Positions 42,705 through 63,525 of a DNA stretch of 64,000 nt are shown one piece after another (positions within the stretch are counted from its first letter, which is position 1; each line of letters begins with the position of its first letter). This DNA is from Trichosphaerium sp. ATCC 40318 (lineage: Eukaryota > Protista > Tubulinea): NCBI GenBank assembly GCA_038496445.1, contig JALMLS010000070.1, forward strand, positions 1-64,000. The letters run 5' to 3'. A program made the translations under genes and the position numbers. The notes under the pieces are model-generated. The model was not told where the DNA came from. It made no database searches and saw only the letters and a list, made by a program, of their open reading frames with translations.

Positions 42705-45700
42705 ATGTCAGCAGCTTTATACTGCAGTGTTACCATCGCTTTAGTCTTCTTTGTGTCGAGTTCCCTTTCCGATTCAAGCGCTTCTCCTGATATTATCTTC
42801 ACTTGTAACGCTACAGCTACTAACTGGGGATGCCCTCCGACTGATTGGCAGAACGTAACAGTTACCGTAAATGGCGAGGAAGTGCAAGTACCAGACCGCT
42901 TAGTCTGTGAAACGATACCAGAACCACTCATGAGTTGGGCGACAAAGACGGTCCGGACTGATAACTATAAGGTTTTCGTTGGCCCACAGGATAACCCACA
43001 GACCGAGTATGTGCCTGGGAGTATCCTCGAAGTAACCGTACTTACCACAAAGTACTGGTCAAAGTACAGAGGGTTGATGATGTACGATCACTTTTTTCTG
43101 TTGTCATCTTACGCTTTTGGTTCCCTCTCCAAACGTAACCAACTAATAATGTTTTAAGGTACGCTGAAGATTCGAACAATAATCACGTGGGGGAATGGAA
43201 GATACCTGATGATTTCCCACGTGCGTAAACACAAATTTAATTGCTTTTGTAGATAGATCTTTGTCGCTTTTTTCATCTTTGTGTATCGCAGTTGCCGAAA
43301 CATGAACTTACACATATGTTTAGCCACATTCCAGTTGCCTTGGGCGTCCGATCATCAAACTTGCGCTCATACGTTGATGCACGCGACTGCTCAATTGAAG
43401 CCTTTGAGATCGACTATTGCGTTTGTAGCTCCACCAAAGGGTACTGGAAAAATCACTTTCCGAGCACTCATAAAGAGCGGTGATGCCAACACTGGTGACT
43501 TTTGGTGGCCTAATCTGGATGGTGACTTTACAATGACCGAATCAAGTGAATCACTTCCAACAAACACAGGATGGTTCCAAACAGAGGTACTTTGTAACAT
43601 CTATTTATTTATTATCTTACTCTTTCAAAGCTTGGCCAATCTTGTACTGAGCGATGTGAGATGGAAAATCTTGAATGCGACTTAGTATCTTTGGAGAGTA
43701 TAAACAGTATTGATAAGATTAACTCCGAATTGAAAGTATCTGGCTTTTTATGCAAGAAACCCTTCCTCAGTGGATGTAGCGCTCTTGGTACAACACAAAG
43801 TACAGCAGGATTTTGTTACTATGACGATACAAGATGTGCAACTCAAGGCCGCTCTAATGATAGAGTAAGTTGCGATGCAACGAGTACAAATGAAGAAGAC
43901 AGGTATGTATACATCTTACTTTCTTCTTTGTTTCTAACTTCTTCTCTAAGCATGCGCTTTTGTCGATGCTTGGATGCTACCCTAGCACCAGTCTCACTAG
44001 ATAACACTACTGTACCTTCCGACTATGGCGACACATCTTCATCCTCCCGACCAATAATCTCCGTTTTGTTGCTATGCTTGTGCACATTCGGTATTGCTTT
44101 CTTCACATCCCAAAATGGTCGCACATCAGCTCCATTTATCCTTGGACTATTACTCGTTGCTATCATCCTATTGCCTTCAGCTCACGGACACAACTGGCTA
44201 ACAGGCGTTAGCCGATCACCACGTGCTAGCACCCAACAACCATGCCCGTCTAAGAGTCAAGAGGGACCTCATGTTCAAGTTGGTCCTGGCCAAGAATTTG
44301 AACTAGAATTTGTTCAAGGACACGCTGGCTTTTCTTACTTTGCAATTGTTAACAAGAAGAACGAGAGTAACTTAAAACTTCACAACACCAAACTGCTCGC
44401 AAGATACTTCAGTGAAGCGCCTGCATCAGCAATCTCAACACTTCCCGTTTTTCACAGACGTTTTAAGAACCGTCCTGCAACAGCGACCGACGCCTACTTA
44501 GGACCTGCGATTGCCAAGACTGATCCTGCCTTTTTACCTCGACCGGAAGTTTTTGGAGGATGGCTAGGTGCTGCAAAGTTCTTTCAATACTTACCAGAGC
44601 ATCGTCAAAACAATTACGCTGAATACCACAATCCAAATATGCCTTGGATTGAAGGCGTTTACAGAGGAAGACATATCCTTAGGAGAACTATAGATTCTGA
44701 TGTTGTTAAGATTAAGATACCGGAGACCTCAGAAAAGGGAAGTTATATTGTTCATTGGGTCTGGAATGGATATCGTGATTGTATAGATGTTGAGTATGTT
44801 GATCAGCAAGTTGAGCATATTTATGGACTTAAATTAAATGGGACACAATACACGTACGTTCTTCAAAATGTGTGAATGTCGATTTTACTTATCAATTGAG
44901 CTTAGGCGTGTGGATCACTGTTTCTTCCCACAGTACAGAAGTGCAGGAAGTACGAACTTTACTTTTAAAACCATTTTCTAACACTGTTTTTTTTTTCAGC
45001 ATGTACAAAAATATACAATGACATCTCTTACTGTGCTCGAACATGTGGCTCAAACTGTTTTGGCATCGCTGTTATGCCTCTGTCAGTTGCATCAACATAC
45101 GCAGAAGAAGCTTCACTTGTTGATAGCGGTTGTTTTGAGAACTTCGATAACTTTACAGCAATTGAAAACCCTGAGGATATAAACGTTTGTTTCTCTGTCG
45201 TACCAAGGGTACCGTCCGAAACCTTTGGAGAAACAGAGGTAGTCTTTGAGGGTGATCCTGCCTATAGAGCCACATGCTATGTGAAAGGAACTGGCCGTTT
45301 GTTTCTGGGCTATGAACCAGATACAGAAAAAGAAATACCATGGAGACACGGAGATAAATGCATCGATTGCAACACAAGAGAAATCAACAAAGACTTATCA
45401 TTGTTCAACATACCAAACTGGCCGCTCTCTGAAGATTGTATAAACTGTGACCTTGAACCTGTAGAAGTTACTAAGCCAAAGGTACCTAAGTTAATCAACG
45501 AACAGTCGAGTATGGCTTGCAACGGAGCAAGGAACGTTTGGACTAAAGTGAACGGAGAGAACCATTACAGCTGTAATGGAACAAATAACGAAGTTTCTGC
45601 GCTATGTCATAAACAACTTAGATTCGATGGTCGACTAGAAAAAACTGATGCTTTCTTCCCTTCAGAGTGTGCTATGGCTGCTAGCTTAGATCCTGAATGT

Positions 45701-45853
45701 ACAGACAAGATCACAATGTTCGATCGCACCTTCGTTTACGGTGGTGTAACCGCTGGCCAGTGCTATTGTCAGACAAAGGTTGAATGCTGTAACGGTTGCT
45801 CACTGGTTGATAGAGGTGTTAACTATCACTCTTATGATCTTACAATGGTTTAA
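42705..45853 (+). CDS. Putative polyprotein: signal peptide, Reeler, Cys-rich, TM, internal signal peptide, His-brace (LPMO-like) domain, Cys-rich modules
   Basis: Introns at 43082-43158, 43221-43323, 43587-43630, 43903-43950, 44854-44905 and ~44950-44999 give one continuous frame. Reeler motifs YVPG..LEV, YRGLMMYA, VGEW, TLMH, FVAPPKGTGKITFRA. Probable 5'-UTR intron at 42585-42698. Confidence 0.85.
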
Positions 45854-46151: not shown

Positions 46152-46801
46152 TTAACCTTCAAATGAGATATCAACCCATGCAACCCAGGATGGGCTTACA
46201 GATGTTTCAACCTTGACAAAGCGTGCTGTGATTGGTGAAGGGAAGGTGTAAGTTAACACTTGATTTCGATACGTATATCCATCAAAAGTGTGCGCCAATG
46301 TTGGTGTGCTGCAGTCCTCACCGTAGTAAATCTTGTGAACTGTACGACCGTTAGGTGCTTGGGTGATAGTCAAGGTTATTTTGGATATACTCTTATTCTC
46401 CCAAAAGTCCATAACGAGCCAGCCAGGAGCATGAGCTTTATGAGCATGAGTATTGTTGGGTTTTGTTTTTGTATGTGCGTACCACCGGAGTTCCAAATGC
46501 CTCCATTTACAAAGTCTAGAACAGTACTGCCTGGATAATTTGTAGAAGCAAAGGCAGAGTTGTAGGTTACTGGGCCTGGAGTACTAGTTGGTGTAATGTT
46601 TGGTGGATATGATGGGGTATATGCTGGTGGAGCCGTTGTTGGTGGATTGGTTGTAGGAGGTAACGTTGTAGGAGGTACCGTTGTAGGTGGTAACGTTGTT
46701 GGTGGATTGGTTGTAGGAGGATTGGTACCAGGGACCTGTTGTGTGGAGGTTGATATTAGTGTAGTAAGGAGAATCAAGTATATTGTAAGAAGAGTTGTCA
46801 T
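46152..46801 (-). CDS. Secreted Pro/Thr-stalk protein with F5/8 type C (discoidin/CBM32-like) domain
   Basis: Signal MTTLLTIYLILLTTLISTST. (x)PPTT repeats. WNSGAHAPGWLVMDF...ARFVKVET..SPSWVAW. One intron. Confidence 0.85.
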
Positions 46802-47317
46802 TGTTTTGTGGATTTTTGGATTTGTGAAAAAGAAGTTGAAAAATACTACAAACTTCCAAAATGACGCCATTTCTCGTATCATACACGAAAACAGAGTAGT
46901 ATTAATTACAATTGGTTCGGGGAGCCACGTGATTATGTGTGCAAACTTTTTTTTTCTACAAAACTACACGTTACGTGAAAATATGAAATTTGGTCTCACT
47001 TGTCTTCACCAAACTTCGCGGAGGCCCATATAATGTCAGCGGTACTTATTTTTTCACTTTTACGTTACCGTACAAGACCCTCCATAACTATTTTTAACTA
47101 TTTATGCCGGAGGCGCGAAGATGCCTATTTCTTGATGGCTCATTTGAACAGATCTACTCAACTAAGTCTCCACTTCGCACTTTTGAGGTTAAATTAGCTA
47201 TTTAATACAATCACAAGCTTCACTCGTAACAATGAAACAAATGTGCATAGTGAAGTACATCGTCTGAAACCCAGCGTTGGCGGCACCGTAAAAGGATACT
47301 ACAGTATTTCTACTGTC

Positions 47318-56506: not shown

Positions 56507-57319
56507 CTAATCCAAAGGATACTCTATGTCAACTATGTTCTTGTCACAATAACTTGGTGTTGTGGTTTTTCTTTTTCTTTTGGATCGTACACCGTTTTTA
56601 TAATAAACCAGCGTCCACAATGATCCATCCTGAAGCCAACCTTTACAATCTCCATCAAGTTTATCATTAATAAACCAACAATGAGATTCTAATTGACCAT
56701 TATCATACCATGTCTTATATTCTCCATGCTTCCTTCCGCTAACATTATTAAATAATGACAAAAGTTGGCCGTTTTTATGCCAACTTTTTGCCTCTCCTTC
56801 AATTTTACCTTCGACGTACTTAAATATTTTCCTTAATTGACCATTTCTATACCATGTCTTTTCTATCCCATGACGTTTGTTATTTACAAACTGAGTATGA
56901 CTACACAACTGACCACTCTCATGCCACCTCATGCATTCTCCTTCTTTTCTACCATTTACGACGAACAACTTTTCACTCAATTTACCACTTGCATACCATC
57001 TTTTAACTTCTCCTTCTGGTATATTATTAACATAACTGAACTTTTCTGCAAGTTGACCATTATCATAGTATCTTAGACACTTTCCATAAAGTCTACCATT
57101 TTTCCATTCTGTTACATGCTTTTTTACAGCTGTACGAAGGAATAATTGTCTCACGTGTTTGTGTTTTGAGGCGTAATGTAAAATCCATTTTCCGTGTTTA
57201 TTAAGCTCAGTATCAAATCTAGTTGTAGTTGCTGCGTGTTTAGATAGCAGAGGCCATTTTATATAAACTTCAACGTCTAAATCTATAATATCAAGCTGTA
57301 ATTCCATAGGAAGTGCCAT
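56507..57319 (-). CDS. Intronless F-box-like + MORN-variant (YwqK-like) repeat protein
   Basis: MALPMELQLDII N-terminus, then about 8 repeats of G.xKxWYxNGQL. Confidence 0.85.
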   Translation of the reverse strand: MALPMELQLDIIDLDVEVYIKWPLLSKHAATTTRFDTELNKHGKWILHYASKHKHVRQLFLRTAVKKHVTEWKNGRLYGKCLRYYDNGQLAEKFSYVNNIPEGEVKRWYASGKLSEKLFVVNGRKEGECMRWHESGQLCSHTQFVNNKRHGIEKTWYRNGQLRKIFKYVEGKIEGEAKSWHKNGQLLSLFNNVSGRKHGEYKTWYDNGQLESHCWFINDKLDGDCKGWLQDGSLWTLVYYKNGVRSKRKRKTTTPSYCDKNIVDIEYPLD

Positions 57320-60243: not shown

Positions 60244-61128
60244 TGCGGTGCTAAATGTCAAAAAACCCGAAATTTCTGGCTGTTTTACGTTGAGAAAGCC
60301 TGGAGTGGTAACGAAAAACATAGAAGCATGTGGCAGTATCAACCTAACTTGGAAGTTTTTTCGGCGCCGGCTACAGAATCTGTAGTTGGCTAATTTAAAC
60401 CGTTAAAAATATGATTTTGTGTTTGCTATACCATGGCACTACGTGCTTTTTTTAAGTTCTACATAGGTCCAAAGCCTAGTGTCAAAATGCAAAAAATAAT
60501 TTTCCCTTATTTTTCTCAGCGTAAACTGCTAACCGTTTAGTGACCACCTCTAATATTCGGTTTAAAACTATCTAAAAGACTGAACTAATTATTGTCCCAT
60601 CACTAGCTGTCAACCTAACAATACCCAAAGGTAGAGTTAGCTTACAACAACATTTGGTCCGGAAAATATTGCAGTAGCATCAATAGCACTTGCTTCAGAT
60701 TTACTTCACTTTCTTTCCAGATTTTATGCAAAGAATGTCATAGGAAGTACGTTAGACTGAATCATTGAGTTGTGACCATGTACAACGATGCACTGTTGAC
60801 ACTATGTTTGTAACTGGAGATTTCGCCTAGTTTATTCATGAGAAACGAAATGTCAGCATACTGTGCGACACAAAAAAAGCTGTGTACCACAAAACGTTGA
60901 CATAATATCAAGATACGCTAAGACGCATGTACAGCATTAACAGAGTAAAACCTGTTTATACTTCACAAGCAAGTGGCGCGTGGAAAAAAAATGTGAAACG
61001 GAAATATAAAATATTTTAGCTCGAATAGTCAAAATAGCGAAAGTTTCAAAGGTGGCGCACCGTTTCATACACGTGACCAAGTAAGCTTGCTAATACCTTC
61101 ATACAACAGCCTAATAAATGAGAATAGA

Positions 61129-63525
61129 ATGACAAGCGATACACCAGACAAATGTCACGTGTTTCGTCTTCCGCTTGAGTTACAACTGGATATTATCGAT
61201 TTAGACTTTGAAGTGTATTTAAAATGGCCTCTGCTATCAAAACATAGCGCATTAGAAACGAGATTTGATAATGACATGAATAAACATGGTAAATGGCTTA
61301 AACGATCAAAAGGAGGCTCTAAATACAAATCTGATTGGAGCCATGGCAGAAGACATGGAGAGTACAAGGAATGGTATTCCAATGGTTGTTTGTCTTTACA
61401 CTGTAACTATGCCAATGGGAAACTTTGTGGTGCGTACAAAAAATGCAATAGATATGGATATATTCAGCTACATTATAGCTATAATGATGACAAGATCCAT
61501 GGAGAGTACCAAAAACAACAATGGGCTTTCAAATCAAATGGTGTATTCCAGAAGAGGTGTAACTACATCAACGGGTTAAAACATGGAGAATACAAAACGT
61601 GGTATGTAGATAATGGTCAAATGATGGAGCGAAATAGTTGTACCAAGAATGATAAAGTTGACAGCGAGTTCCAAGGATGGCATGAAAGCGGTGTATTATC
61701 GAAGAAGTGTAACTACATCAACGGTAAAAAACATGGAGTATACAAAACGTGGTATGCAGATAATGGTCAAATGAGGAAGCAATGCAGTTACATCAATGAT
61801 AAACTACACGGACAACGAAATGAGTGGTATGAGAATGGCCAGTTAAACAAGCAGTGTAATTACTTCAACGATAAACTCAATGGAGAGTGCCAGGAATGGC
61901 ATGACAATGGCCAGCTATACGAGCAGTGCCAGTACACTAATGATAAACTCAATGGAGAGTACCAAGAATGGCGTTATAACGGCCAATTAAGCAATCTTAG
62001 CAATTATATTGAAGGTAAGCTCCATGGAGAGTCCAAAGACTGGTACAGTAATGGTATATTACGCATTAAGTGCAACTACATCAACGGTTTAAAACAAGGA
62101 GATTATTTTGAATTTTTTAATAAGAATGCACAAATCATCAGAAAGCAATGTAGTTATCTCAATGATGAACTACATGGAGAGTACAAGGAATACTATGAAA
62201 ATAGCCAATTGCGTGAACACTGTCATTATGTAAACGGCAAAAAAGAGGGACAATCAAATATTTGGAATGATGATGGCAAATTGATTAGGCAACGCTACTG
62301 CTGCAATGGTGAAGTCCAAGAAGACTCTTGGTTTGATCATGAAAATAATCAAATTTCAAAGCACGTGCATTACAAAAGTGAAAAAGAGAGAGTGTGGAAG
62401 TATTGGAACAGTAATGGCCAGCTTATTAAAGAAGAAAATAAATATAAAACTGATGACGATCAGATTGTTATGGATGGAGAGAATAAAAGATGGTACATAA
62501 ATGGACAACTGAAGATACAAAGCTACTATTACAGAGGCTCACTCCATGGGGAGTATAAGGAGTGGTATGACAACGGGCAACTGAAGAAGCAATGTTACTA
62601 TTGTAAAGATTCACTAAATGGAGTGTATAAAGAGTGGCACAGTAATAGCCAACTGAGAACGTCAGCAGTTCAGAAAAACGGAAAACAAGAAGGAGAGTAC
62701 AAATCTTGGCATGACAATGGTCAATTACAAGGGCACTGCAATTACATCAATGGTGAACAACATGGAGATCGCAAGTACTGGTATGACAATGGTCAATTGT
62801 ATGAACATTATTTATTCATTGATGGCACAAATAAAGGACAATACAAGGCTTGGTACAGAAATGGTAAATTGAAAGCACTATGCAACCACATCAATTTTGG
62901 GTTTGAAGGAGAGTTCAAAAAGTGGTTCCTTAATGGTAGATTGAAGATGCAATGCACCTATGCCAATGGATATCGATATGGGCAATATAAGTCTTGGTAT
63001 GACAATGGTCAACTGAAGAAACAAAGGAACCATATCGATTATGATTGGGCTGTTATGATACTAGATGGAGAGTACAAAAAATGGTATGCCAATGGCCAAC
63101 TTAAGGCTCAGTTTTGTATTGTTGAGGGATGGTACAGTGGAGAGTTCAAAAAGTGGCATGAAAATGGCCAAATACGCCAACATGGTCACTTTGATGGTGA
63201 GTCTAGCAAGCATGGTGATTTCAAAAAGTGGTACAACAACGGTCAATTACAGGAGCAATGTAAGTACATCTATGAAACTCTGGATGGACAGTATAAGTAT
63301 TGGCATGAAAATGGACAATTAAAGAAGCAACACAACTATGAAAAGGGCAAGATAAAAGGGGATCATAAAACTTGGTATGACAACGGCCAATTGAAGAAAC
63401 AATGCAACCATGAAAAAGGTGAGTGTAAAAAATGGCATGCCAATGGCTATCTCAAGTCCTATTTGGTTCGAAGTATCACTGGATTCCACTGCGGAGCTGA
63501 AGGGTGTCGATGTAAATACGGATAG
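61129..63525 (+). CDS. Intronless F-box-like + long MORN-variant repeat protein
   Basis: ATG at 61129. RLPLELQLDII, then more than 25 ~24-aa repeats HGEYKxWYxNGQLxxxCxYxNG. Confidence 0.9.
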   Translation: MTSDTPDKCHVFRLPLELQLDIIDLDFEVYLKWPLLSKHSALETRFDNDMNKHGKWLKRSKGGSKYKSDWSHGRRHGEYKEWYSNGCLSLHCNYANGKLCGAYKKCNRYGYIQLHYSYNDDKIHGEYQKQQWAFKSNGVFQKRCNYINGLKHGEYKTWYVDNGQMMERNSCTKNDKVDSEFQGWHESGVLSKKCNYINGKKHGVYKTWYADNGQMRKQCSYINDKLHGQRNEWYENGQLNKQCNYFNDKLNGECQEWHDNGQLYEQCQYTNDKLNGEYQEWRYNGQLSNLSNYIEGKLHGESKDWYSNGILRIKCNYINGLKQGDYFEFFNKNAQIIRKQCSYLNDELHGEYKEYYENSQLREHCHYVNGKKEGQSNIWNDDGKLIRQRYCCNGEVQEDSWFDHENNQISKHVHYKSEKERVWKYWNSNGQLIKEENKYKTDDDQIVMDGENKRWYINGQLKIQSYYYRGSLHGEYKEWYDNGQLKKQCYYCKDSLNGVYKEWHSNSQLRTSAVQKNGKQEGEYKSWHDNGQLQGHCNYINGEQHGDRKYWYDNGQLYEHYLFIDGTNKGQYKAWYRNGKLKALCNHINFGFEGEFKKWFLNGRLKMQCTYANGYRYGQYKSWYDNGQLKKQRNHIDYDWAVMILDGEYKKWYANGQLKAQFCIVEGWYSGEFKKWHENGQIRQHGHFDGESSKHGDFKKWYNNGQLQEQCKYIYETLDGQYKYWHENGQLKKQHNYEKGKIKGDHKTWYDNGQLKKQCNHEKGECKKWHANGYLKSYLVRSITGFHCGAEGCRCKYG

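Follow-up and report, generated by a model that had tools for sequence, protein, structure and literature searches.

All known lytic polysaccharide monooxygenases (LPMOs) and histidine-brace proteins use N-terminal signal peptides, and the brace is unable to bind copper before the signal peptide has been removed (PMC10952591). The X325 proteins are fungal, about 150 residues long and anchored by glycosylphosphatidylinositol (GPI), and have an Asp as fourth copper ligand (PMC10952591). The auxiliary activity (AA) family AA15, found in protists and algae, arranges His1, a second His and an axial Tyr, the latter two being His91 and Tyr184 in TdAA15A, where the spacing from His1 to His2 is 90 residues (PMC5823890). 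Cutting at internal signal peptides by the host signal peptidase is described for the Gn/Gc precursors of bunyaviruses (PMC7926653). Here we analyze a gene of the tubulinean protist Trichosphaerium sp. ATCC 40318, located at 42705-45853 on the forward strand of a 64,000-nucleotide stretch (the window; positions 1 to 64,000 of contig JALMLS010000070.1, GenBank assembly GCA_038496445.1), whose predicted product carries an LPMO-like domain starting with His405. We consider it probable that signal peptidase cuts this precursor after Gly404, so that a hairpin-anchored Reeler protein stays behind and a soluble chain beginning with His405 binds copper together with His45 of the domain, in whose numbering His405 is His1. 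Judged from its sequence and a structural model, the domain is a new family within the LPMO-fold histidine-brace proteins, with a predicted brace and a proposed new way of unmasking His1.

Placement of His1 in the precursor

The precursor is laid out as a signal peptide, a Reeler domain, a Cys-rich domain, a two-helix membrane hairpin that ends in AHG, the His domain and a Cys-rich tail. It contains three hydrophobic segments (Table 1), the signal peptide and the two hairpin helices (TM1 and TM2), and His405 follows directly after TM2. An earlier note, made from the letters of the window, had marked out an LPMO-like histidine-brace domain here, and its boundaries and motifs stand: translation of 44189-44853 on the forward strand (665 nucleotides, 221 residues, the second part of exon 43951-44853) returns HNWL...SR..PC, QVGPGQEFELEFVQGHAGFSYFAIV and VKIKIP...GSYIVHWVWNGYRDCIDVEY as quoted there, with the second His and the Tyr at the codons it had named. 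The domain end is the last base ahead of a GT donor, the GT..AG intron starting at 44854. What the note overlooked is that His1 lies behind an internal rather than an N-terminal signal peptide, and His1 is not the start of the gene product but residue 405 of a 924-residue precursor.

The relatives of the domain bear directly on this placement. In all 129 relatives matched from residue 1 of the query onward, His occupies that position and is preceded by a hydrophobic stretch, with Ala (97), Gly (15), Ser (14), Pro (2) or Thr (1) at position -1 and Ala, Val, Thr, Ser, Cys or Gly at position -3; the window copy has Gly at -1 and Ala at -3. The small-residue rule at these two positions holds for internal and N-terminal placements alike. 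Among 114 full-domain matches, the domain lies within 60 residues of the N-terminus in 34 and begins at residue 64 or later in 80, mostly between 200 and 920, and at least 57 of 89 internal-domain relatives have two hydrophobic segments within 75 residues ahead of His1. The whole precursor is a single open reading frame (ORF) on transcript contigs of about 3 kb in relatives, among them Trinity transcripts of Rhizamoeba saxonica and Flabellula baltica. In stand-alone forms the domain starts, with His at +1, right behind a short signal peptide of 13-18 residues at the N-terminus. One of them, P0013, has 454 residues, is found on 1.6-kb contigs and shows a 15-residue signal peptide followed by H-N-W; on one of its contigs (L001) an in-frame TAA 72 nucleotides before the ATG shows the ORF to be complete and the stand-alone form to be genuine. 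Since the same domain follows an N-terminal signal peptide in P0013, the family appears to need His as residue 1, which most members would obtain through predicted cleavage at an internal signal peptide. The -3/-1 context, the 129 relatives and the stand-alone forms all point to His as residue 1 of the mature chain. On a tree of the domain, the internal and N-terminal layouts require 13-19 changes; we draw no conclusion from this number because some of the rows that appear N-terminal are truncated contigs.

These observations suggest a route by which the N-terminal signal peptide would lead the Reeler and Cys-rich domains into the lumen of the endoplasmic reticulum, TM1 would halt transfer and anchor the Reeler product, and TM2 would re-insert after an 8-residue loop to act as a second signal peptide. 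A signal peptidase cut after A-H-G (Gly404) would then yield a Reeler protein anchored in the membrane and a soluble chain with His405 at its start. In this chain the freed N-terminal His would form a copper histidine brace with the invariant His45 and probably with Tyr195. The insert of about 95 residues after His2, with its invariant Tyr73, would shape the surface around this site, and a disulfide between Cys19 and Cys198 would pin the N-terminal segment to the strand of Tyr195. The Cys-rich tail may serve as a module for binding, and the Reeler partner translated in the same chain possibly as one for electron supply or docking.

The modules on either side of the domain are likewise shared with relatives. 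On a profile built from the upstream parts of 82 relatives (A2), the window exons are colinear over positions 5-366, with 72.6, 15.9, 98.3, 57.6 and 16.7 bits in turn. Membership of the upstream module in the Reeler family is supported by these scores, by the Pfam Reeler model (PF02014), which 27 of the 82 A2 members match (best E 4.3e-11), and by the match of the profile to the F-spondin reeler domain 2zou in the PDB (E 6.5e-6); the window's upstream exons alone gave no Pfam match. Two residues are conserved in the relatives' Reeler-like module, at A2 columns 128 and 373: a Met, in 64 of 64 occupied rows, and a His, in 70 of 74. The window copy has both, the Met in LMSW and the His in C-x5-H-x2-A-x2-KP. 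We speculate, by analogy with DOMON cytochromes, that this pair could be a haem site; to our knowledge, haem binding is not known for any Reeler domain. A2 positions 196-296 match the GnT-V chains 6yjq and 5zic at E 3.6e-6, and the position between Reeler and hairpin is a surprising location for so small a domain of the GnT-V (MGAT5) C-terminal type. Other modules stand upstream in a few relatives, namely a cupredoxin (PF00127, 32.6 bits) or DOMON-like domains: residues 366-441 of P0094 are a cupredoxin of the plastocyanin/azurin type, the upstream parts of P0058 and P0093 hold DOMON-like domains that fall short of the Pfam cut-off, each of these modules precedes the internal signal peptide, and in these three proteins the upstream Reeler module is replaced or extended. 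On the other side, the 283-residue tail (45002-45850) has homologous counterparts in the C-terminal parts of 41 relatives, always C-terminal of the LPMO-like domain. Searches of Pfam and the PDB gave no match for it, and a lead to PAN/apple domains is weak (ESM Atlas feature scores 0.80-0.87).

Family and predicted fold

The domain is a real and large family. In an exhaustive HMMER search, 362 clusters matched at E<=1e-3, of which 180 reached E<=1e-10 and 10 reached E<=1e-30, the best match having 39% identity; clusters were counted at 50% identity, and 362 is a lower bound. The named sources are protist transcriptomes, from the Tubulinea Rhizamoeba saxonica and Flabellula baltica, the acantharian Phyllostaurus siculus and MMETSP, and the remaining relatives are metatranscriptome contigs of about mRNA length. 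A scan of viral contigs found no relatives. Word-index protein searches with the 228-residue domain, the 414-residue stop-free frame and the family alignment, under a length filter that excluded precursors of about 900 residues, returned none or 2 proteins, because of that filter and because the relatives share few exact words.

Across the 115 full domains aligned as A1, which are 25-37% identical to the window copy, His1, Arg9, His45 and Tyr73 are invariant, and both His of the proposed brace are therefore conserved in all 115 homologues, as the earlier note's reading requires. Position 195, on a strand that spans residues 195-203 in the model, is Tyr in 110 sequences and Phe in 5. Trp192 is kept in 114, Asp197 in 111 and Asp200 in 113, and the positions kept in at least 90% comprise Asn2, Trp3, Pro18, Gly44, Asp141, Tyr146, Pro152, Asp171, Gly184, Trp192, Gly194, Tyr195, Asp197, Asp200 and Gly213. 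Cys19 and Cys198 are both present in 88 sequences and both missing from 27, with no mixed case, and this perfect co-occurrence argues for a disulfide that would tie the N-terminal loop to the Tyr195 strand. The short spacing of 44 residues between His1 and His2 and the long conserved insert behind His2, both pointed out in the earlier note, are real.

AlphaFold run on the single sequence of the domain reached a predicted local distance difference test (pLDDT) score of 38.9, and alignment A1 was used as input instead. The AlphaFold2 model obtained with it has a pLDDT of 93.3 (95 for residues 1-10) and a predicted TM-score of 0.90, and is a beta-sandwich into which about 95 helix-rich residues (56-150) are inserted. 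Its top structural matches in a search of the whole PDB are LaX325 (6ibh, Z 7.7-7.8) and an AA15 chain (5msz, Z 7.7), with chains of AA9, AA10, AA11, AA13 and AA16 at Z 5.2-6.5. By our count, 16 of the top 50 rows of this search are LPMO or LPMO-like chains; these mostly place model residue 1 on chain residue 1, at 12-22% identity, and the other rows are mostly at 4-12%. A second comparison, made on Foldseek's own top matches, agrees with this ranking of LPMO-type chains. The ESM Atlas leads, at a feature score of 0.91 and TM 0.54, to clusters of eukaryotes with PF03067 (LPMO_10) annotated on 13-23% of their members. With no Z reaching 8, the core matches an LPMO-type beta-sandwich moderately, and the high-confidence model with its LPMO-type best matches supports the LPMO fold that had been read from the sequence.

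Novelty had been made to depend on the lack of a strong match to an existing AA family, and none turned up. The window protein gave no significant match to any Pfam model, AA9 and LPMO_10 included; AA9 (PF03443) is matched weakly by 4 of the 115 relatives (best E 0.0057), which falls short of membership, and PF03067 by none of the 115 domains at E<=0.1. Profile A1, run against 177,635 distinct PDB sequences, found none at E<=10, and the single sequence likewise found none. Neither mark of AA10/AA15, a PF03067 match or a His2 about 90-110 residues after His1, is seen here. In the searchable literature, which leaves out most subscription journals, we found no description of an LPMO joined to a Reeler domain, of an internal signal peptide ahead of a histidine brace, or of an LPMO in Amoebozoa or protists.

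Gene model and features of the window

The window is eukaryotic in character, with a G+C content of about 37% and short GT..AG introns. Within it, the gene model comprises 7 exons and 924 codons for amino acids, and all its introns are GT..AG, of 44-103 nucleotides (Table 1). The joined model was examined by frame checks and one tblastn run against the window; searches and folding used its separate parts. Evidence from RNA came from one public run, whose RNA-derived contigs share >99% identity with the window. They show the joints 43081>43159 and 43220>43324, both GT..AG, and a loose contig end at 43586 goes on with the opening letters of exon 4 (43631). Spliced contigs span exons 1-4, and one further contig spans 43913-44338 unbroken, over the hairpin and the His codon. 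The 48-nucleotide GT..AG intron at 43903-43950 was placed by splice signals and by colinearity on A2 (287>290) and would be in frame if retained; one RNA contig reads through 43913-43950, inside it. The last two introns (44854-44905 and 44950-44999, 52 and 50 nucleotides, GT..AG) were placed by homology and restore the frame. Exon 6 was set at 44906-44949 because the relatives' conserved motif R[IV]DHCxF, present after the domain in the 9 relatives examined, is encoded there; an 11-nucleotide micro-exon at 44939-44949 was rejected on the same ground.

Table 1. Positions in the window of the exons, predicted modules and selected domain residues of the precursor gene
Feature	Position	Strand	Evidence
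Exon 1: start Met, signal peptide (residues 1-22), first Reeler-like part, Met in LMSW	42705..43081	+	ORF, RNA joint, A2 positions 5-99, 72.6 bits
Exon 2: middle of Reeler-like module	43159..43220	+	RNA joints on both sides, A2 positions 101-119
Exon 3: second half of Reeler-like module, motifs C..H..A..KP and GTGKITF	43324..43586	+	A2 positions 125-201, 98.3 bits
Exon 4: Cys-rich domain resembling GnT-V (MGAT5) C-terminal domain	43631..43902	+	A2 positions 204-287, 57.6 bits
Exon 5 start: Ser-rich stalk	43951..44044	+	Splice signals, A2 colinearity
TM1 (residues 357-378): predicted stop-transfer helix	44045..44110	+	Kyte-Doolittle
TM2 (residues 383-404): predicted internal signal peptide, ends A-H-G	44123..44188	+	Hydrophobic segment
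Predicted LPMO-fold domain	44189..44853	+	HMMER, conservation, AlphaFold2 model, structural search
His1	44189-44191	+	Translation
Arg9	44213-44215	+	Translation
Cys19	44243-44245	+	Translation
His45	44321-44323	+	Translation
Tyr73	44405-44407	+	Translation
Tyr195	44771-44773	+	Translation
Cys198	44780-44782	+	Translation
Exon 6 (44 nucleotides): R-V-D-H-C-F-F motif	44906..44949	+	Homology, GT..AG; no RNA cover
Exon 7: Cys-rich C-terminal region of about 283 residues and stop	45000..45853	+	Homology to 41 relatives

The RNA contig and the window differ at position 44278, with G in the former and A in the latter. Being synonymous (Gln30, CAA to CAG), the difference probably reflects allele or strain rather than editing. 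Downstream of the precursor gene, a convergent neighbour at 46152-46882 on the reverse strand encodes a signal peptide, a mucin-like stretch rich in Thr and Pro and an F5/8 type C domain (discoidin, galactose-binding; PF00754, 31.1 bits), and its product is probably another secreted glycan-binding protein. Two large ORFs with MORN_2 repeats lie farther along, at 56507-57319 on the reverse strand (98 bits) and 61087-63525 on the forward strand (221 bits).

Alternative readings and comparison with described systems

The released domain is most likely a redox-active extracellular copper protein, and we lean toward an LPMO-like oxidase whose target is a wall or prey polymer. A redox-active enzyme is favoured by the many conserved residues that lie outside the brace, by the Tyr/Phe pattern at position 195, by a layout like that of a catalytic domain with a binding tail, and by the upstream modules of relatives, which include cupredoxin and DOMON-like domains besides Reeler. 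The same brace could instead belong to a non-catalytic copper protein of the X325/Bim1 type that captures copper at the surface or hands it over, perhaps with an Asp (Asp197, Asp200 or Asp171) as additional ligand, and that would not oxidize polysaccharides. X325 proteins are without polysaccharide activity, and Bim1 acts in copper uptake (PMC7924993, PMC10952591); LaX325 heads the list of structural matches, aligned over 122 of its roughly 150 residues, several Asp near Tyr195 are nearly invariant, and a cupredoxin stands upstream in some relatives. We regard this explanation as rather unlikely, however, because Arg9, Tyr73, Tyr146, Trp192, His28, Gln30 and Gln35 together with the insert suggest an elaborate active or binding surface, Tyr or Phe at position 195 is the axial pattern of LPMOs, and the Cys-rich tail recalls catalytic domains joined to binding modules. 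Moreover, similarity to X325 (DUF6595) is absent in Pfam scans, and the window domain is predicted to be released rather than GPI-anchored. A more far-reaching form of the redox-enzyme reading, which we hold to be unlikely, is a one-polypeptide extracellular redox system, in which the cut would yield, in a 1:1 ratio, an anchored Reeler protein that binds haem or docks a donor and a copper monooxygenase of a new family, and in which the internal signal peptide would separate the two parts, unmask the His and keep the enzyme free of copper until it is outside the cytosol.

Two further explanations dispense with the cut. TM2 may be an uncleaved helix and the domain a metal-free, tethered beta-sandwich for adhesion or glycan binding, with its His conserved for structural reasons; internal cleavage is a prediction, the Z scores below 8 fit a generic beta-sandwich, and Reeler and PAN-like neighbours are typical of adhesion proteins. 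Yet essentially all 129 relatives conform to the signal-peptidase rule at positions -1 and -3, complete transcripts place the domain, with His at +1, directly after N-terminal signal peptides of 13-18 residues, and two invariant His with a Tyr/Phe position form the exact brace pattern, which together make the uncleaved helix very improbable. Alternatively, two genes, one for a GPI- or TM-anchored Reeler protein and one for an LPMO-like protein with its own signal peptide, could have been read as one, since TM1 with the Ser-rich stretch ahead of it resembles a GPI signal, there is an in-frame Met at 43953 and the RNA contig that bridges the junction may come from the antisense strand. This artefact is scarcely credible: read as an ORF, the window has no stop codon between the Reeler part and the part with the His domain, the Met at 43953 sits 36 residues before TM1 and not where a signal peptide would start, and about 80 relatives at 25-40% identity, from cultured amoebae and metatranscriptomes, have both parts in one ORF on transcript-sized contigs.

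Several results nevertheless weigh against a cleaved, copper-binding, LPMO-like enzyme. All structural matches are below Z 8, a range in which a match may mean no more than a widespread arrangement, and generic beta-sandwiches come close to LPMO-type chains in score. Foldseek against the PDB gave weak, mixed beta-sandwich matches with TM-scores of at most 0.33. The case for the fold rests on the enrichment of LPMO chains and on the residue-1 register rather than on the Z scores. The top match is to a non-catalytic copper protein, a tie to any LPMO family at the level of sequence is absent in the Pfam and PDB-sequence searches, and the window copy departs from a well-conserved consensus at D141N, H92F, R143Y and W41F. 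Cleavage at the internal site is a prediction from the -3/-1 rule alone. The RNA-derived contigs do not cover 44339-45853, and the contig over the His codon opens with a joint, 43853>43913, that skips 59 nucleotides and has CT..AC ends. These ends are a canonical GT..AG on the minus strand, so the contig may be a spliced antisense transcript inside the coding exons of the forward-strand gene; read in sense, the joint shifts the frame and leads to a stop near 44001.

Histidine-brace copper proteins matter for biomass conversion, pathogenesis and copper biology, and new families have repeatedly brought new substrates or roles. The present family has at least 362 clusters at 50% identity, is of protist origin wherever an organism is named, and was missed by Pfam and by PDB sequence searches. 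If our preferred reading of a cut at Gly404 is true, the unmasking signal peptide would stand in the middle of a conserved two-protein precursor in most relatives, as against the N-terminus in the known cases (PMC10952591), and a cell would be using a trick otherwise found mainly in viral glycoproteins. A single cut would both split two proteins and make the catalytic residue, which is directly testable, and the Reeler, DOMON or cupredoxin modules indicate a candidate built-in partner.

The window domain is predicted to share with X325 and Bim1 a secreted beta-sandwich that starts with His after a signal peptide, and LaX325 superposes with a root-mean-square deviation (rmsd) of 3.1-3.2 over 122 aligned residues, residue 1 on residue 1, at Z 7.7-7.8. 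Unlike X325, with which Pfam and PDB searches detected no sequence similarity, the domain has about 220 residues, carries a conserved insert of about 95 residues, belongs to a protist and lies behind an internal signal peptide. TdAA15A (5msz) superposes at Z 7.7, with an rmsd of 2.7 over 118 aligned residues and 17% identity; the His1, second His and axial Tyr of AA15 have candidate counterparts in the domain, and some Atlas neighbours are annotated as LPMO_10. The spacing from His1 to His2 is 44 residues here as opposed to 90 in TdAA15A, however, and the large insert follows His2 rather than preceding it. The AA9, AA10, AA11, AA13 and AA16 chains are alike in mostly aligning residue 1 on residue 1, at 13-23% identity, and in a C-terminal strand with Tyr or Phe, whereas the family profile finds no LPMO sequence in the PDB at E<=10. 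Reeler-DOMON-cytochrome b561 proteins (FRRS1/SDR2) exist, and the cytochrome domain of cellobiose dehydrogenase reduces LPMOs. The precursor recalls FRRS1/SDR2 in its upstream Reeler domain, in the DOMON-like or cupredoxin domains of some relatives and in a conserved Met/His pair reminiscent of DOMON haem ligation, but the window precursor has no b561 domain. In its proposed processing, it is closest to bunyavirus Gn/Gc, as one ORF with a TM hairpin whose second helix would be the signal peptide of the downstream protein; unlike Gn/Gc, it is the product of a protist's own gene, and the catalytic N-terminal residue would itself arise from the cut.

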